15,468 nucleotides of DNA from assembly GCF_006345805.1 (NCBI RefSeq), contig NW_021825486.1, forward strand, positions 1 through 15,468. The letters are read 5' to 3'. The notes beneath the pieces were generated by a model, which had not been told where the DNA came from, did not search any database, and saw nothing but the letters and a program-made list of their open reading frames with translations. The stretch comes from Octopus sinensis. Lineage: Eukaryota. This document shows, one piece after another, positions 3,788 through 15,412 of this stretch (its first letter is position 1; each line of letters opens with the position of its first letter). Position numbers and translations under genes: made by a program.

Positions 3788-4632
3788 ATGTTCTTTACCA
3801 AATTTATAACTATATATAATATCATATCCTATTTGGTATTAATAATTATATAATGTTTAGGGAATATTGGCAATGTCTTTATTTTTTGTATATAAACTGT
3901 CTATGATGACAGAACTCGGCATTTCGCTCTTTATTTTGAAAATAATGTTAATCAGCATTTGTATATTGGCCCTTTTCGGGGTACTTAGTGGTAATATGTA
4001 TTTATTTTCTCGGAAAAGATTTACTTCTGTTTCGAATGAAAGCAGGTTTTTTTTTTTTTTTAATTCCTATCCATATGGCCATATGGCCTTACTTCTGTTT
4101 CGGTAAGTATATATAATTTTAATATAGTATGGAGTTGTAATTTTGATGAATATAGGACTTATCATTGGGACGTCAATTTATTTTTTTACAGAACAAAAAA
4201 TGGTTAAAAAAATAATTGTTTAAAATAAAGATTATTCATAAATTTGTAGAAAATATAAAAACAAATGTTGATGACTATGATGAGAATCATTTTGCACTTG
4301 ATTTATTGCAAGAATCTTTAAAATGTTGCGGATCTGATTCCTATGGCGACTATATTGATCTTTTGGAAAGTTTTCCTAAAAGTTGTTGTGACAGTGAGAA
4401 CTGTACAGAAAATAACATTTATAAAATAGTATCGTTATGTAACTATTTAAGGGTTGTCAAAATTCAGTTGAAATTTTCATGAAGAATTTTAGTTTGTACT
4501 TTATTAACATTATCATTATGGAAGCATTCATCGCCGTAATTGATTTGTTGATTAATCGTTAAGATTTCTGAATTTTTAATTCTTATTTTCAACAGGCGTA
4601 ATGAAATCGAACACTGCACGGAATTTTGGTAA
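3788..4632 (+). CDS. TSPAN: Tetraspanin (about 215 aa), six exons with micro-introns, interrupted in this sequence by a 68-bp insertion
   Basis: Exons 3788-3835, 3861-4034 (insertion 4035-4102 excluded), 4128-4202, 4231-4428, 4452-4535 and 4564-4632 total 648 nt and join in one frame. GT-AG introns are 3836-3860 (25 nt), 4103-4127 (25), 4203-4230 (28), 4429-4451 (23) and 4536-4563 (28). The product has four hydrophobic segments and the EC2 signature LQESLKCCG..PKSCC...C..IYKI|GC. The symbol is family-level only. Confidence 0.85.
4021..4102. repeat. 14-bp direct repeat flanking a 54-bp insert (T15 run plus palindrome) in tetraspanin exon 2
   Basis: ttacttctgtttcg occurs at 4021-4034 and 4089-4102. 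The insert contains a T run at 4047-4061 and the perfect palindrome ccatatggccatatgg at 4071-4086. Confidence 0.85.
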
Positions 4633-6240: not shown

Positions 6241-7684
6241 CAGTGGGCGCAAAAAAATCCGGTTTTCTAATTTCTCTATTTTTTTATATTGTGCGATATA
6301 ATATTTTTTTTTAATCTTAAATTTTAGTGAAAAGTAACTCTTATTTTTTTATTTTGATTATTTTCATTATTTTTTTCAAGAGATATTCCAATTTAAATTT
6401 ACAATGCGCAAAAAAACCCGGTTTTAAAAAAATGTCAAATTAATATTTAATATGCCGTCCTTTAGCCAAAAAACATCGTACACCCTCTCGGCATGCTGTT
6501 TATGAGTTTCTGTATTAGATCTTTCGGCATATTTCCCAAATTTCGATAATTTTCTTTCAGCTCATGCATATTTTTTGGAGGATTTTCGTACAATTTACTT
6601 AATATATGCCCAAAGATGTTCTATTGGATTTAAATCTGGCGATTGCGTGTGCCCAATCCAATAGTTTGACGTCTTTCGGCAAAGAAATCTTTCGTGATCT
6701 TTGATGTGTGTGGAGGAGCCATGTCTTGTTGGAATATGAATTCATTCAAGCACATTTTCGCAGCGGACTCCCACAGATTATTTGATAATATGTTCACATA
6801 AGTTGCTGAGTTCATAGTTCCATTTATAAATACTAGATTGCCTACTCCATAATACCCGAAACATCCCCACACCATTATTTTCCCCCTCCAAATTTAACAG
6901 TTGGAGATAAGTGCGATTTTCTAGACGTGTGTGTTTTTCCTATAACAAAATTCCTTTTTTTGTGATTAAAAATTTCGAAACAGCATCATCACTAAAAATA
7001 GTTGATTTCCATGACGTCATATTCAGTGCGATAAATTTTTTGACAAGGAATATCGTTTTTCGATATTAATTTTAGACAGATACGGTTTTTTTTGACAACA
7101 CGTGAATATATTTCCTTTTGTTTCAGATAATTCCCAATTGTTCGTTTTGAGACGATTTTTCCTGTCAAGAATGAAGATCCTTTGACAGGCAACGGGAAGA
7201 TTTTTTCGGATTGTCAGAAACAAGCGTCAATAAAGTATTTATATCATCATTATTTAATGTCCTAGGTCTTCCAGAACGGACAGTCTCTGTGTTGTTCCAT
7301 ATTTTTGTATTTACGTATGTAATCTCCCACTGTTGATCTGGGAATTTCTACTTCTTCTGAAATTTGTTTATATGTCAATTAAGGAAATAAAGTTGAATAA
7401 TTTGTCCTTCACAATTCTGAAATACACGACATCCAACAACAACAAAAATGACAACAATTTCAAATTTTGGAGAATAAAAGACTCAATAATAAAAAAACCG
7501 AGTTTTTTTTGCGCATTTTAAAATTAAATTCAAGATATCTCTATGAAAAATAAAAAAATACTTAAAATAAAAAACATACTCGATTTACATTTCAAAATGA
7601 TACTAAATTAAAAAAAAATAATATAAAATTTATATTGAAAAATTCGAAAAAATAAGAAAACCGGATTTTTTTTTGCGCCCACTG
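6241..7684 (-). mobile_element. Tc1-family DD34E-type transposon with IR/DR ends (element 2, 1444 bp)
   Basis: TA duplication at 6239-6240 and 7685-7686. TIR cagtgggcgc(A7 or A9)tccggttttct. Inner repeats atgcgc(A)n..cggtttt at 6404-6425 and, inverted, ~7494-7516. Confidence 0.95.
6440..7432 (-). pseudogene. Tc1 transposase of element 2, frameshifted; start approximate
   Basis: ISEEVEIPRSTVGDYIRKY, SGRPR, KRTIGNYLK, IFSD, LSPTVKFGGEKIMVWGCFGYYGVG, FIFQQDMAPPHTSK and PDLNPIEHLWAYIK, ending AKGRHIKY* (stop 6440-6442). Confidence 0.9.
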
Positions 7685-8149: not shown

Positions 8150-8415
8150 CAAGCGGTACTTGAGACAGCTGGGTGTAGATAAGACAGCTGGTGTAAGTCT
8201 CTACAGGCTTATATGTAGTCAACTGTTCTTAAGAGGACTCTGGAAAGTGTCTCGTTTGATGCTCGCTAATCCAGCCCTTTCCTGACGTTTAGTCAGCGAG
8301 AGGCGCTGGACTGCACCTTCTCGAAGGTCTACAGTACCAGAGAAGAGGAGGAATAAGTGGAGGAGGTGCGTGGAGTGTCATTCTCTGCTCACTTCGAAGG
8401 CTCTGGACTTGGAAA
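8150..8415. other. GC-richer non-coding island with short repeats, possibly a solo LTR or other repeat fragment
   Basis: Visibly more GC-rich than its flanks, with no ORF. Near-tandem agacagctgg(g)tgta at 8163-8177 and 8182-8195; purine tract at ~8339-8367. No partner LTR or TG..CA termini confirmed. Confidence 0.25.
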
Positions 8416-8556
8416 AATTACTTAGTTAATTAGTTTCTTTTTATTAGTAAACTAAATAACTGCCTTTAATTTAGAGTCACGCTGCTAGAATACTTATTTA
8501 CCCAAATTCCATAAATGACTTTTTTATTTCACCCAAGAATCACCAACATTCAATTA

Positions 8557-10014
8557 CACTAGGTGCAAAAAAAACCGTTTTTTTAAATACGGCATATTTT
8601 GCAAAGATAACCGTGATTTTTCTTTGTCGATATCGAAAGGGATCATTAAATTAACCCTAAATCAATTTTGTTATATTTTTTTTGTATTGTGTTATATGTC
8701 TAAATTAAAAATTTTAATTACACGAGCGCAATAAAAAACCGTTTATTTTGGTGAGTGTGACATTTTTTTTTTTTTTTAGAATTTTAAACTCGATAAAATT
8801 ACGAATGCTTGATGTAATAACAAAAGGAAAGATTCTAAGCTTGAATGCGTTAAATTGGACCACTAAAAAAATATCTGACGAGCTTAATATCCCGCGATCA
8901 ACTATCGCTGACTTCATCCGAAAATTCATTAAATATGGTACGACTGAAACAATGAAAGGTTCGGGGAGACCAAAAATGCTTAATAAGGACGATATCCTTA
9001 TTTTACTCAACCTGGTTAAAGAGGACCCCCCAAAAAAAGCTGATTGCTTAAGGAATGATCTCCGTAAAATAACCGGAAGAACAGTCGGTAAAAGATCCAT
9101 CGCAAATTATTTAAGAAGGGAGCAAATATATGCTCGTGTATGTAGAAAAAAACCATTATTGAACAAAATAAATAGTGAAAAACGCTATAACATGGCAAAG
9201 CATTTCATTACTGTGCCAAACACTGAATGGATGAGGACAATTTTCAGTGACGAATGCAGTTTCGAAGTTTTTAATATTAAAAAACGGCAATATTGTTATC
9301 GGAAAAACAATACAGGCCTTCAAAAAAGCAACCTTTCGCCTACTGTAAAATTTGGTGGGGGGAAGTTATGGTCTGGGGCTGTTTTTCCTATTACGGAATG
9401 GGCTCGCTTGCTTTTATACACGGGAATATGAATTCCGCACTTTATATCAACACACTATGTAACCATTTATGGGAATCTGCAAAAAAATGGAGCTTAGTGA
9501 CTTTATTTTCCAACAAGACATGGCACCATGTGATACTTCCAGATGACTATGCGATTTTTTCAAGAAAAGAAAGTAAACCTTTTACCATGGGCACCTCAAT
9601 CACCGGATTTAAATCCGATCGAACATATATGGGCTCATATGAAGAGGGAATTAAACACCTTTCATCCAAAGAATGTTTCGGAATTGAAAGAAAAAATCGA
9701 AAATATTTGGAACGAAATACCGATTAGTTTTATAAAAAAATTAATCGAAAGCATGCCGAATAGAGCACAAAAGCTTTTTAAGGCAAAAGGGGACCATATT
9801 GAATACTAACTTTAAATAATCAAAAATAAAACGGTTTTTTATTGCGTTTGATTTTTTGTTAGTTATAATTTGTTAAGTAAAAATGATTACAAGTTCAAAT
9901 ATAAAAATAAAACTAGTGTTAAAAAATGATAAATTATTCAATTCTTTAATAAAAACAATATAGTTGCATAGTAAATTTTTGATATTTCGAAAAAACGGTT
10001 TTTTTTGCACCTAG
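8557..10014 (+). mobile_element. Tc1-family DD34E transposon with IR/DR ends (element 3); right terminus truncated
   Basis: Left end is TA (8555-8556) then cactaggtgcaaaaaaaaccgttttt. The right end aaaaaacggttttttttgcacctag stops at 10014 without the final TG or the TA. Inner repeats cgcaataaaaaaccgttt(t)atttt(t)g at 8727-8750 and, inverted, 9821-9846. Confidence 0.93.
8805..9809 (+). CDS. Tc1 DD34E transposase (about 335 aa once three 1-nt deletions are restored)
   Basis: Runs MLDVITKGKIL (ATG 8805), HTH region, GRPK, TIFSDEC, VMVWGCF, FIFQQDMAP and WAPQSPDLNPIEHIW to KAKGDHIEY* (9809). The three ORF pieces are linked by -1 shifts at ~9362, ~9482 and ~9541, with no internal stop in the restored frame. 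D-to-E spacing is 34 after restoration. Confidence 0.9.
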
Positions 10015-10560: not shown

Positions 10561-10714
10561 TAAATAAGACAATATAATTTTTTAAATCTTAAAAATTGTT
10601 TTCGCTGAGTAAAATTTTATTCTTATTGGAATGCTAATTATTGATTGTGTTCTTATTTTATTGGGTTAACTATTTAAATTAAATTTAGCGACTTTTTCAG
10701 TTTTCGATTAACAA

Positions 10715-12828
10715 ATGGAACATACGTTAATCACGGATGACTACGAGCTTTATAAAAATGAAATTAAAAATGCCATTCAAATGGACAGCCATTTTGAGAA
10801 AAACGAAGTCTCAGTCTCATTTCTAAACGGCCTGATCAAAGATTTGCCATTAACAATAAATCAAAAAATATGTCTCAGGTTAATGGTTGAATTCATCTTA
10901 GAGACGAGCTGTACAATTTTCTTTTGAATCACTTTCTATCTCAAAAAAGAGAACCAATTCCAAACAAACGTCTAAATTTAGAAAAAATAGCAAAAATTAA
11001 CGGAAACTTTAACAAGTTCTTTCAATTTATTTACAGTTGTTTTAAAGTTGCTCATTGAAGGGACTTTTGGTTATGGAATGATGGTTTACTTCCACTTTCT
11101 GTGGGTGATCTTTGTTTTGAATTTAATTCAATTAATTTTTTTTATGTGCCTTTTTTTCGTACCACTCATAATTTCCAAAGTTCCACTCTTTTTAGCGCCT
11201 TTTACATTTTCTGACGTGTTGACGGCAAACGTAGACTTGTTTTACTATTTTAGGGTTTTATTGAAAATTCGTTCCTTTTTACGGAAACTATGACAAATTT
11301 ACGTGGAAATTTGATTTTTCTATTTTATACTATCCAATCATATTTTCAAGTTCTATTCTGCAACTGGCCTATCTTTTTTACATGTATTAATAGTATTATT
11401 AGCGATAGAGTCAACGAAAGCTATAAAGCAAAGGTTTCAGTGCAGAACTACAAGACTTTGAACGTCCACTTCATCAAAACTCTTTACGCACACCGAGGCA
11501 TATTCAGCTTAGAGTTCAAGAATAAACAAAAAGCAATTTTCTTTAGTTTAATAGTAATTTCTAAGTCAAAACATTTAGACAAAATTGGTCGACTCTAAGG
11601 AAAGGGAAAGGTGTTTGAAAACACGTGATAAACAAATTTATTACACGTTTATAAGAGCTCTAACGGGATTTGTTTCGGTAGTTCTGTTTTTTGTACACGT
11701 GATCGCTCTTTACTACGCCAATAAATTAACGATCGACAATCCTGTAACTTTGTGGGTAAAAATGAAAGGACAATCTTTGGTTGGAGTTTCTGACCTCGCT
11801 TGTGTATTTTATCGACGGATTATTATTGTCGTTGATTTCTAATTTTTTTGAAAAAGTTGAACTTTACCCCCCCGAAACAAAACTAAAATTTAAACTCATC
11901 AGGTTTGTTTTTTCTGATATTTTGATTAATTTCGATCAACATTTTTTCGGTTTACATTTATTTCTACATTCTGGTCAGTTCTGTGACTCAAAATATAATT
12001 TCTGGGATCCATGTTAGTCTTTCTAACTTACGTGACAGTGCTGGGAGAATTACGTCGGGAAAACATGTACAGACTCATTCTGGTTGAACTCTTGGGAATT
12101 CTGGGACATTTCATTTATTCTCTGTTTATCCTGTTTGATTAAATAAAATAACAAGTTTAGAAAGGTGTTTAAACGTAAAAAAGAATTTAACGTGAGTGAC
12201 AACATTGTTCAGCTCATTCAGTTCTACTCAATTGCCTCGTTTGTCTATCAAATATTTATTTAAGTTTGAGTGTGATTTTTGTGCCTCTGATCAGCATTCC
12301 AATACTTTTTTATTTATTCGGGATCTTTTTATTAAAATTTGTTTATCTAATTTTTCTAACAATTTAGATTCATATCAGTTTCTTGAATATTTCGTCGGGC
12401 AAACTTAACAAATACACTCAGTCTAACTTATTTGGAATTGTGTCCCTCATCATTGTACTTGGACTACACACCATTCCAAACTTTTTTGTTTATTTCAAGT
12501 AATAATTGATAAAACTGTATTCAGTCTGAAACCATCAGAATCGTGTGGCCCATATCGCAACACGACATTCATGTACGCATCTATGGTACAAATGATTGAA
12601 GTTGACGCGACGAGCAATAAAGCTATTTTAAGTTACAAGCATATTGTGCCTTCGTTTGCTATTTTAAATTTGTAACAATTATATAGTATAGTAGATTAAC
12701 GTGCATTTTTCTGATTATAATGGTGAAAAATATCAAAGTATCTTACAAAAACCTTGAAAAAAATATTGAAAAGGTATACCAAATTTTGTATTTTTTAGAA
12801 ACAACAAAAAAACTTAACAACTACATAA
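10715..12828 (+). CDS. TMC: Transmembrane channel-like (TMC) family protein (roughly 590 aa) with about 14 micro-introns
   Basis: The spliced translation gives TMC motifs in order: LPLTINQKICLR, LIEGTFGYGMMVYFHFLWVIFVLNL, DVLTAN|GFIENSFLFYGNY, NLWLEFLTSLV, VELYPPETKLKFKLIR, CWENYVGENMYRLI (TMC signature CWET.VGQE.Y), EFNVSDNIV, VIFVPLI and KPSESCGPY. Introns: 10879-10901, 11231-11253, 11384-11402, 11554-11578, 11744-11768, 12013-12038, 12133-12160, 12239-12264, 12341-12367, 12499-12524, 12672-12694 and 12774-12798; tentative 10970-10990 and ~11903-11934. One-nt restorations are needed at ~11280 and ~12058; junctions at 10920-10990 and 11900-12012 are unresolved; the stop is at 12826-12828 or ~12848. 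The symbol is family-level only. Confidence 0.9.
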
Positions 12829-13024
12829 CTTATATATTTTTTTTTTAAATAACGGGGATAATTCTTAAATTAAAAGTATATAGTACATGACCTGATAAAT
12901 AACCATTAGACCACAAATAACTAGTTTTAGAGCAAAAAATAAGAAAATCTGAGCCATCCAATAATCTTCGTGGTCTCAATAAAAAACGATCTCAGAGTGC
13001 AAAAAAGTGTAAAAGAACCTAATT

Positions 13025-13616
13025 CTTATTTTTCGAACGAGATTTTTCTTTTTTTAAAGATTCTAAAAATAATCGAGCAGCAATAACTCGATAAATATTT
13101 AGCGATCTCTCTATTTTTTCATTAATTTCTGCAACCAATTTCTTGACAATAGAATCAATCTCCTCAGTTATGTGGTCGGCCCTACGTTAGCATGAACTAG
13201 TAGTTGATCGGAAATAACATCAACAAGCTTATATCTTGATATTTTTTAAGTAATATCGATAGATTTGAGGTAGTCGCCTACGATTTATTGGATTTGTTGT
13301 TTTAGAGCTTTATATGTCTAAATATGTAGATAATAGTCGATTGTTGGTTCTAGAGATTTTAGACAGGAGCTTCTTAATTTGTCTAGCATTTCATTAAATT
13401 TTATGTTTGAAATAATCGCTTTCGTTTCTTCCGCATGCATATCTTGATTATAAAATAAGTAATGAGTAAATTTTTTGAAGATCAAATCCTTAAATAATTC
13501 TATTTTTTAATATTATGTGAACAAATGAAATTTTTTTGAATGATATTTGTATCATTGTTTCCTGACGAGAGAAATGGATTTGTAACAAAAAGTTGTATTA
13601 ATATAAAGTTCACTTC
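13025..13616 (-). pseudogene. Unidentified coding-like region, apparently continuous across the hAT insertion with 15011-15255
   Basis: Long protein-like stretches ELFKDLIFKKFTHYLFYNQDMHAEETKAIISNIKFNEMLDKLRSSCLKSLEPTIDYYLHI and DHITEEIDSIVKKLVAEINEKIERSLNIYRVIAARLFLESLKKRK, with several stops. The empty-site join reads in frame as YSFINNLLNCVGL-GEVNF. Confidence 0.3.
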
Positions 13617-13624
13617 CCCTAAAC

Positions 13625-15010
13625 CAGGGGTTCTCAACCTTTTTAGCTCAAGGGCCAAATCGATAATTAAGATTAGCTTCGCGGGCCGCACAAAAAATAT
13701 TTATATATTTTTATATTTTCCAAGCCGGTAACTCGCTTGCAATCCGAAGTGCAGCCACTGCTGATGGTAATGAGTTTTTGGACTCTGTTTTTTCTTTTTT
13801 TAATTTCCATTTCCTTATAAAGAATTACAAGCTAAAAAATCTAAAAAAAAGGCGTTGTAACTAAAAAGAAAGTATTATTTGTTTATTAAGTTTTTGAAAT
13901 CCGGAATAAGTAAAGTCGAAGAAGTTCGTAAAAGCTGACTCGAGTGATTATCCGTGAGATTGTTACGATATTTATTTTTTATGCGAATCATTTTCCTAAA
14001 TATTGATTCGCATAAAAAGTAGATCCAAACATTGATATATTCATATATGCATTGTGTGTTATATTTTTGAATTTGTCTTGAGGAATTAATTCGTAAAATT
14101 AATAATGGACGCTTTTTTGAACAATGCCGCCAGTTCTATATCATGTTGTAAATTAATGAGTTCTAGTTGAAACTTTGCAGGCGCATCCTTAATTTCCACG
14201 CTGAATGGAGTTGCGAATATTTTCATTAAAGGAAGGAATTTTTTAAAATTCTAAAAATTAAATTTATATAATGTACCCCAAAACGTGCTTCAAATTGATT
14301 AATTAAATCACCAATTATGGATATGTATTTTTCATAAGCAGCGCCTTCGTTGTTTTCAGATAGTGAATAAAAATGAGATGTATCTCCCTCTTTAACGGAA
14401 GTCATCCATAAATATAATTTTTCGATAAACAAAGAAATATATCATATACCTGATAACAGAGTTTGCCTTTTCCTTGTAATTCAACATTGAGATCCGACAA
14501 ATGCGTGGTTAAATCAACATAAAAAGCCAAATCGGCAATCCATCTTTCATCGTAAAGTTCATCGAAAATTACTCTGTCTTTGGTAAACTCCTTAATTTCT
14601 GGAAGCAATTTATAGAACCTTTAATAAAATATTAAGGCATTTCGAACGACTTAACCACCTCACTTCAGTATGAAAAATAACATCTCCATACTCAGCATCA
14701 ACTTCTTCCAAAAAAGATTTAAAATATCGGTGATTGAGCGCTTTTGAGCGTATCCAATAAACGATATTAACGACTTTTTTGGAAACATGTTCCATTTTAA
14801 TGGACTTGGCGATAAGATTTTCTGGTGAATTATGCAGTGATGCCATATTAATTGATCGAAACTATTTTCGGTTATATCTTTGGAACAATCAATAAATAAT
14901 TAAATTTTAACATTATTAAAAAATTAAAAAAGTTAGTTACTCTAGAGGGGCCGCAAAAAAAAATCCTGCGGGCCGCATGCGGCCCCGGGGGCCGCATTTG
15001 AGAACCGCTG
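13625..15010 (-). mobile_element. Internally deleted hAT transposon of the Buster/SPIN/Charlie group (1386 bp)
   Basis: Perfect 8-bp target duplication ccctaaac at 13617-13624 and 15011-15018, fitting nnnTAnnn. 13-bp TIR caggggttctcaa / cagcggttctcaa (1 mismatch). GC-rich subterminal gggccgca motifs at ~13683, ~14948, ~14970 and ~14989. Confidence 0.95.
13875..14846 (-). pseudogene. C-terminal half of a Buster/SPIN (GTF2IRD2/ZBED5-like) hAT transposase
   Basis: HCIIH(Q)ENL.AKS (~14839-14800), ALNHRYFKSFLEEVDAEYGDVIFHTEVRWLSR, WIADLAFYVDLTTHLSDLNVELQGK, and the dimerisation motif LCESIFRKM.IKNKYRNNLTD. The N-terminal half is missing and there are several frameshifts. Confidence 0.9.
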
Positions 15011-15412
15011 CCCTAAACCAACACAATTTAACAAATTATTAATAAAGGAATAACTAACTCATTCAAACGTAATTAATGAGTTATTTTATTTACCCATCAT
15101 CAGAAACATCATATAAATAAACAATTATAATTCTTATCTTTTTTGAAATATACACTCACAGGCGACGCCCGCGAATCGAGATGGTTTTTTGAGCGAATAT
15201 TTCTTGGATAGTGCGCTCTAACTCTTTCTCGATCGCGTCAGCCTCTCGTCACTAAAGAATTATTTTTTTAGATTACATCCATATTTGTTATTAAACTAAT
15301 AAAGTTTATCTTAGAAATAAACAATGGATGTTTTTCAATAAGTTCAAAGATAGAGGATGACTCGTATAAGAGTCATATTTAATGGACTCACGTACTTATC
15401 CTTACCCTAGTG

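Follow-up and report, generated by a model that had tools for sequence, protein, structure and literature searches.

The question raised by the plus strand between positions 10715 and 12828 of contig NW_021825486.1 (assembly GCF_006345805.1; the 15,468 nucleotides analysed here are called the window) is whether its short open reading frames (ORFs) are the exons of a single gene, separated by spliceosomal introns of fewer than 30 nucleotides (nt). A first-pass annotation had proposed this for the interval 10879-12798, in which it listed twelve GT..AG segments of 19-28 nt whose removal would reveal a member of the TMC (transmembrane channel-like) family. All twelve are present, with coordinates and lengths agreeing to the nucleotide. 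The DNA is AT-rich; the GC content of the window varies from about 0.26 to 0.37 and is approximately 0.30, both overall and around the locus. Our conclusion is that 10715-12828 (+) is very probably a TMC-family animal gene carrying miniaturised spliceosomal introns, and the arguments for and against this conclusion are presented below.

The gene model was obtained by removing the twelve listed segments and one further intron (11036-11060) and by correcting three single-base frame breaks, which are described later. It comprises about 1.79 kilobases (kb) of coding sequence in 14 exons of 30-244 nt and encodes 597 residues. Its 13 introns, all with canonical GT..AG ends, are 19-28 nt long (median 25), and their density, which had been put at 7-8 per kb of coding sequence, was measured as 7.2. 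The spliced and frame-corrected protein matches the Pfam family TMC (PF07810) with 31.2 bits (E 3.4e-7; gathering cut-off 25), and no Pfam match was obtained with the single unspliced ORFs of the region, so that the TMC gene does emerge on removal of the introns, as had been claimed. Without frame correction the spliced model scores 15.6 bits, below the cut-off. Among solved structures, the model matched Caenorhabditis elegans TMC-2 (8tkp, E 6.5e-11) and TMC-1 (7usw, E 6.6e-8). A segment of C. elegans TMC-2 was used to gather TMC references, and the TMC fragments fetched in this way served as a profile. Against many of these references the spliced model scores 35-48 bits; its residues 101-585 form one colinear alignment with the TMC protein of Solemya velum (labelled P0160), and a full-length profile built from 38 references gives 54.6 bits, colinear across profile positions 90-681. 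Colinearity with the family extends from FGxG..YF via FYGxY, PxxxL(K/R), CWExxxG(x)E, EF.V and SRSxNF to CGP(F/Y), and intron positions are shared as well. One 1-nt frame break splits FYGxY and another splits CWE..GE, and the presence of three such interruptions in the assembled gene is one of the ways in which it differs from the rest of the family. The protein is also very divergent, as the scores against single references attest, and short, with almost no N- or C-terminal tails. Its N-terminus does not align to the TMC profile, and ATG 10715, the first ATG of the frame-1 ORF, is thus the presumptive start. A word-indexed protein search with the spliced models as query returned no match; its prefilter was saturated by low-complexity words.

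Within 10879-12798 there are 45 GT..AG pairs of 19-28 nt, compared with 52.5 ± 8.5 in shuffled sequences. As these pairs are at the chance level, the mere existence of the twelve segments proves nothing, and it is their placement that constitutes the evidence. Nor can continuity of the reading frame be used in its stead. A thread through the region that uses a minimum of introns remains open, yet it matches no Pfam family and no homologue, and it follows that ORF continuity by itself is worthless as evidence in this sequence.

Placement was evaluated with a dynamic programme that aligns the TMC profile directly to DNA (region 10600-12950). It provides for codon matches, insertions and deletions, for one-base frame errors and for GT..AG introns in all three phases, with a flat penalty for any intron length from 15 to 300 nt. 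The alignment reached 79 bits, against 18.7-25.1 bits for the controls, which comprised its reverse complement and its plain reversal, stretches from four other parts of the window, and six shuffled versions. Nine introns were selected, beginning at 11231 (23 nt), 11554 (25), 11744 (25), 12133 (28), 12239 (26), 12341 (27), 12499 (26) and 12672 (23), the ninth being a 57-nt skip that is probably spurious. Eight of the nine are therefore 23-28 nt long within the much wider permitted range, and in the controls the lengths chosen were 33-292 nt. The first and last introns of the model lie outside the aligned part of the protein, and introns 1, 4, 7 and 13 are backed mainly by conservation of position, to which we turn below. 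The introns are richer in AT than the exons (76% versus 67.5%), and retention of any one of the twelve originally listed brings a stop codon into frame, either in the intron itself or no more than 72 nt on. All 13 TMC introns have GT..AG termini, as do the two introns of a second gene in the window. In a set of 16 candidate introns the donors are GTA (9) and GTT (7) and the acceptors TAG (9), AAG (5) and CAG (2), numbers that are too small for a sequence logo. Inspected by eye, these 16 introns contain a patch rich in A at a distance of roughly 12-18 nt from the 5' end and often have T at positions -3 to -5, in a background that is itself T-rich.

It was of particular interest to compare the positions of the introns with those in ordinary animal genes. 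For this purpose the TMC gene of Solemya velum and TMC3 of the scallop Ylistrum balloti (the mollusc genes are labelled P0160 and P0097) were used; their intron positions and phases were taken from exact protein-to-DNA matching, and the three genes were placed with the 38 references in one MAFFT alignment. Five of the 13 introns coincide with a mollusc intron in both alignment column and phase (0.15 expected), seven do so within one codon (0.46 expected) and eight within two codons (0.77 expected). In 20,000 randomisations of 13 positions the observed match counts were never reached. The introns at 11036 and 11231 match exactly in both molluscs, those at 11554 and 12499 in Solemya only and the one at 12239 in the scallop only. 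We regard this sharing of position and phase as the strongest evidence obtainable without RNA; the same argument from conserved position has been applied to RPS13 in myxozoans (PMC13644364). At the matching sites the mollusc introns measure from about 100 nt to 10 kb. Since introns of normal size occupy these positions in molluscs, the micro-introns, most of which appear to lie at ancestral metazoan intron positions, would be ordinary U2-type introns that have shrunk in length rather than a new class of element. A conventional spliceosome would remove them, presumably recognising little beyond a 5' GT(A/T), a branch region rich in A about 12-18 nt from the start of the intron and a 3' AG. One further site was noted in this comparison. 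At 11903 the codon for arginine in KLI(R) has the form AG|GT, exactly where both mollusc genes have a phase-2 intron. The only canonical acceptor for this donor is 76 nt away, and its use would remove a transmembrane helix. The site has the appearance of one that has lost its intron but kept a donor-like exon junction.

We now consider the introns individually, from the 5' end; all lie on the plus strand. Exon 1 (10715-10878) begins with the ATG noted above. Intron 1 (10879-10901; 23 nt, phase 2, GTT..TAG) keeps the ORF open into exon 2 and lies no more than one alignment column from phase-2 introns of both mollusc genes, in an N-terminal part where the alignment is weak. Intron 2 (11036-11060; 25 nt, phase 1, GTT..AAG) links exon 2 to the exon encoding FGxG and leads from frame 0 to frame 1 with no need of frame correction. 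Its split codon is located two residues ahead of FG, as is that of the introns in Solemya (259, phase 1) and the scallop (144, phase 1). A competing model in which this segment is coding (LLIEG) scores 5.9 bits more but requires a fourth frameshift, and the intron is preferred because it requires none and because its phase-1 position is exactly conserved. Intron 3 (11231-11253; 23 nt, phase 0, GTA..TAG) was selected by the spliced aligner at most settings and is the second of the two exact matches to both molluscs.

Intron 4 (11384-11402; 19 nt, phase 2, GTA..TAG), the shortest, brings the reading back from frame 2 into frame 0, immediately ahead of a TAA at 11388. It is the least certain of the internal introns and was not robustly picked by the spliced aligner. 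Both molluscs have a phase-2 intron nearby, which MAFFT places four columns away; when residues are counted without gaps from the conserved tyrosine of the second transmembrane segment (TM2), each of the three genes has 17 residues and then a split codon of phase 2, which lends this intron support. Intron 5 (11554-11578; 25 nt, phase 0, GTA..TAG) was chosen by the aligner and coincides with a Solemya intron (405, phase 0). Intron 6 (11744-11768; 25 nt, phase 0, GTA..AAG) was chosen with the minimum intron length set to 15 nt, and a 31-nt intron in its place (11756-11786), scoring 3.5 bits lower, was rejected. Intron 7 (12013-12038; 26 nt, phase 0, GTT..CAG) connects ..SGIH with CWENYVG and was selected under some penalties only. 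It follows ..SGIH and adjoins a Solemya intron (541, phase 0) that follows ..SGI.

Each of the next five introns was found by the aligner. Intron 8 (12133-12160; 28 nt, phase 2, GTT..TAG) is the longest, and intron 9 (12239-12264; 26 nt, phase 2, GTT..AAG) corresponds exactly to a scallop TMC3 intron (563, phase 2). Intron 10 (12341-12367; 27 nt, phase 0, GTT..TAG) is the sole one of the 13 with a length divisible by three, and its retention would read into an in-frame TAG at 12365. Intron 11 (12499-12524; 26 nt, phase 2, GTA..CAG) stands directly before LKPS..CGP and matches Solemya exactly (681, phase 2). Intron 12 (12672-12694; 23 nt, phase 2, GTA..TAG) is one codon removed from an intron of the same phase in both molluscs. 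Intron 13 (12774-12798; 25 nt, phase 0, GTA..TAG) also agrees in phase with both and is at most two columns off; it is not needed for an open frame. The last exon (12799-12828) ends with the stop codon TAA at 12826-12828.

Two junctions that had been cited as examples of phase matching, IDNP|DNLWLEFL and FN|LKPSESCGPY, were reproduced in this model. The more general statement that phases match exactly at most junctions overlooked three 1-nt frame breaks, and intron 2 was omitted from the list. These breaks are sites at which flanking conserved residues occupy different frames and which no intron can bridge. At the first (11276-11280, +), a run of five T, one base is missing between ..SFLF and YGNYDKF. 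GFIENSFLF in frame 0 and YGNYDKFTW in frame 2, when joined, align without gaps to the Solemya sequence GELSNTIMFYGAYTDST and to LLFYGFYSKETF in C. elegans TMC-2, and the model with this break corrected exceeds a straight reading of frame 0 by about 6 bits on the N-terminal domain and by 3.4 bits on the whole protein. At the second (11926-11950, +) there is one surplus base, for which the run of six T at 11943-11948 is the likeliest site; frame 2 (KLIRFVFSDILINF..; ..RFVFSDILINF..) has to switch here to frame 0 (..SVYIYFYILVSSVTQNIISGIH), and the nearby TQNIISGI aligns to TQNITESGI of Solemya. The sole canonical intron available at this place, of 76 nt (11903-11978), was rejected as an explanation of the second break, since it deletes a transmembrane helix. 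The third break (12055-12061, +) falls in GGGAAAA, where one base is missing between CWENYVG and ENMYRL. CWENYV-ENMYRL corresponds residue for residue to CWENEVGEEVFKL of Solemya, and correction of this break is worth about 15 bits of the Pfam TMC score.

A Tc1/mariner copy in the same window (8718-9806) shows comparable breaks: three overlapping frames together tile its complete transposase, interrupted by three gaps of 1 nt and by no stop codon. Each of the six breaks, three in the TMC gene and three in this copy, involves exactly one nucleotide; in five of them it is a base that is absent, and most of the six occur in homopolymer runs. This pattern is typical of consensus errors in long-read or pyrosequencing assemblies, and we think it likely that the breaks are homopolymer errors of the assembly rather than real mutations. 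Programmed -1 frameshifting was set aside as an explanation because, on inspection of the sites, the TMC breaks and one Tc1 copy do not fit a slippery heptamer.

Several observations weigh against the conclusion that this is a functional gene with micro-introns. The basis on which we infer splicing is purely comparative. The introns at 12133 and 12341 have no mollusc counterpart, and for the one at 11744 the nearest mollusc intron, also of phase 0, is 7-8 codons downstream. The 19-nt intron hinges on the frame correction made 100 nt upstream of it, and a reading in frame 0 can pass through it without meeting a stop. The assembled sequence as it stands does not encode the conserved protein, and if the assembly is accurate the locus is a pseudogene or an aberrant gene. 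Finally, about 400 nt of tetraspanin exons elsewhere in the window are free of frame breaks, which makes a very high rate of assembly error less likely and counts, weakly, against our interpretation; taken for itself, the absence of breaks there is compatible with assembly error and with a pseudogene alike.

The most serious alternative accepts the micro-introns as real and holds that the TMC locus is a recently inactivated pseudogene, the frame breaks being true mutations in a channel that the parasite no longer needed. We consider this unlikely, although it deserves to be taken seriously. The three breaks lie inside conserved motifs, the gene is surrounded by decayed Tc1/mariner and hAT copies, and many sensory and neural genes have been lost in myxozoans and dicyemids (PMC13644364, PMC6736024). 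Against this, the 597 codons contain no in-frame stop, though 4.9% of the possible substitutions would create one, and the splice-site dinucleotides are intact in 26 of 26 cases. If substitutions outnumber indels by about ten to one, a rough estimate is that 2-3 disabling substitutions should accompany three indels. The uniform size of the breaks and their preference for homopolymers also speak against decay, as does the fact that two diverged Tc1 copies break at the same run of G followed by A, in the manner of systematic errors.

A second alternative, which we regard as very unlikely, takes the assembly to be right and supposes that the gene is spliced differently, with no frame correction, to give an ORF of 579 residues. 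Frame 0 would run straight across 11254-11553 with no 19-nt intron, the 76-nt intron 11903-11978 would be used, and a 22-nt intron (12017-12038) would replace the 26-nt one. This ORF is indeed uninterrupted and employs canonical GT..AG sites throughout, and its donor at 11903 is exactly at the conserved phase-2 position, the LA(R)/LI(R) codon of both molluscs. However, it drops FYGxY, one transmembrane helix and the near-invariant CWE motif, and it attains only 15.6 bits against the TMC cut-off of 25. The dropped motifs are still perfectly encoded in an adjacent frame, and such a protein therefore cannot be the long-term product of the locus. As noted above, threads that preserve an ORF are easily found in this sequence.

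The frame-corrected gene with 13 micro-introns is thus the reading we retain, and the remainder of the window bears on how far it can be generalised. The 3' part of a tetraspanin-like gene lies at 4128-4562 (+), in three exons separated by introns at 4203-4230 (28 nt) and 4429-4451 (23 nt). The spliced exons score 60.9 bits against Pfam Tetraspanin, compared with 41.9 for the largest exon alone, and the gene carries the CCG motif. A 13-nt intron or a frameshift at about 4218 was considered and discarded, as the canonical 28-nt intron explains the junction. Upstream of these exons are a 25-nt GT..AG segment (4103-4127) and a run of 17 T (4046-4062), and the part that would encode the first two transmembrane segments (3855-4127) is outside the gene model. 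Micro-introns are hence found in both of the genes modelled here, which argues that they may be a property of the genome as a whole. The idea that this organism possesses micro-intron splicing, put forward at the outset, draws support from this second gene as well as from the positions shared with molluscs.

The window also contains transposons. Three Tc1/mariner-like elements with terminal inverted repeats occupy 704-2247, 6390-7530 and 8702-9871. The two diverged copies mentioned above lose frame at the same site, VKFGGGK|(V/I)MVWGCF, where a G-run is followed by an A-run (9350-9370, + strand; 6870-6900, - strand). In the minus-strand copy (6840-6930) an in-frame G GGA AAA followed by TAA would formally qualify as a -1 slippery heptamer, which is not the case in the other copy. 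The shared break may be a consensus error of a systematic kind, a defect that was inherited or a signal for frameshifting. Fragments of a hAT-like transposase lie in five successive overlapping frames at 13878-14861 (-), in the stretch 13878-15020, which has a GC-rich palindromic end at 14944-15020 (-; ..GCGGGCCGCATGCGGCCCCGGGGGCCGC..TTGAGAACCGCTGCCCTA); the one fragment searched against Pfam gave no match. Between transposon copies, at 8280-8430, there is a GC-rich island with open frames on both strands that belong to no recognised family. Just downstream of the TMC stop codon, two open segments of 55 and 62 codons (13022-13506, -) may be exons of a convergent gene. Scans of the window for tRNA genes and Rfam families found none, and no recorded protein was identical to any of the seven window ORFs that were looked up.

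From what kind of organism might such a locus come? An animal source is indicated by a genetic code of the standard type, by intron positions shared among metazoans and by the presence of a tetraspanin alongside hAT and Tc1/mariner elements, and these features speak against ciliates and nucleomorphs. The TMC matches themselves were not used for placement, because the reference set was drawn from the 150 top-scoring hits of a profile biased towards nematodes. Both of the proteins that match the spliced model best come from molluscs and rank near the bottom of this set; given its bias, they are uninformative as to lineage. Among animals, the locus behaves like the genome-wide ultra-short introns of myxobolid myxozoans and dicyemids, and in this sense the phenomenon is already known. 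The first-pass annotation was right to name dicyemids, for which such introns are published, among the lineages concerned, but its list left out the myxobolids (PMC4986447, PMC13644364).

The source is, in our judgement, probably a myxobolid such as Henneguya or Thelohanellus, which we prefer because the GC content of about 30% and the median intron of 25 nt fit this group best. Myxobolids (Henneguya salminicola, Thelohanellus kitauei, Myxobolus spp.) likewise possess multi-intron genes with canonical GT..AG introns of about 20-28 nt at conserved ancestral positions, a GC content near 29% and both hAT and Tc1/mariner transposons; a GT(A/T) 5' signal and an A-rich patch before the AG may be shared as well. 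The median intron is 27 base pairs (bp) and the GC content 29.13% in H. salminicola, and the median is 22 bp in T. kitauei and M. rasmusseni (PMC13644364). For T. kitauei a GC content of about 29% is given, along with hAT-Charlie elements and an intron length of 20-25 bp (PMC4986447), and the GC content of myxobolids is put at 28.8-29.1% (PMC13644364, PMC4986447). In animals with ultra-short introns the 5' splice site is reduced to GTa, with weak A residues upstream of AG (PMC13644364). The window differs in that its median lies between the published 22 and 27 and in that splicing has here been read from the sequence alone. As regards the origin of the frame breaks, assemblies of candidate sources were produced in ways that yield errors of this type: that of H. 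salminicola was made from PacBio data with NextDenovo and Racon polishing (PMC13644364), and that of T. kitauei is a Newbler hybrid (PMC4986447).

A dicyemid is otherwise the candidate to be considered, and we think it a rather improbable one. Dicyema japonicum resembles the window in its introns of less than 30 nt, its high number of introns per gene (6.2), its repeat-rich parasite genome (49% repeats) and perhaps its reduced splice-site motifs. It differs in GC content, which is 36.7%, and its assembly merges Illumina and PacBio data (PMC6736024). Its introns are described as similarly short where PMC13644364 cites them. Less probable still is an animal lineage outside Myxobolidae and Dicyemida. 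This would represent a third independent origin in Metazoa of introns shorter than 30 nt, including a spliced 19-nt intron at a conserved phase-2 position.

The introns of nucleomorphs, at 18-21 nt, are in the same length class as those of the window. So are those of ciliates: Paramecium introns are of about 25 nt, a likeness also drawn in PMC4986447, and those of Stentor are 15-16 nt, as cited in PMC13644364. To place 19 nt close to the lower limit known for introns was consequently an overstatement, given the Stentor and nucleomorph lengths and the medians of 22 bp in two myxobolids. There is a further likeness in that introns with lengths divisible by three are scarce in ciliates and nucleomorphs unless they bear a stop, and the one such intron among the 13 of the TMC gene has its in-frame TAG. 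A ciliate or chlorarachniophyte nucleomorph as the source is nevertheless scarcely credible. There is no in-frame TAA or TAG in 597 codons, so that the code is not of the Paramecium or Tetrahymena type and appears to be standard; the gene set, with its CCG-motif tetraspanin, Tc1/mariner elements and hAT element, is that of an animal; and a quarter to half of the introns share position and phase with mollusc genes, at what are taken to be ancestral metazoan positions. Nucleomorphs are not known to contain a 15-kb stretch rich in transposons. That there is no gene here at all, merely chance GT..AG pairs in AT-rich DNA and over-read TMC motifs, is next to inconceivable, since the chance-level abundance of such pairs is outweighed by 79 bits against at most 25 in the aligner controls, by significant Pfam and Protein Data Bank matches and by intron positions whose conservation no randomisation equalled.

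As a whole, these results are of value for annotation and method rather than as a discovery, the phenomenon having been published for myxobolids and dicyemids. Standard ORF finders and word-based searches miss genes of this kind completely, and where RNA data are lacking, micro-introns can be validated by setting their positions and phases against those of introns in ordinary genomes. The three single-base breaks serve as a warning, either of the quality of the assembly or of gene decay at the TMC locus. Were the source a third, undescribed animal lineage with such introns, the finding would be important, if true. For the TMC family and the animals that carry introns of this size, the locus suggests that ancestral intron positions can persist while intron length collapses to about 25 nt.

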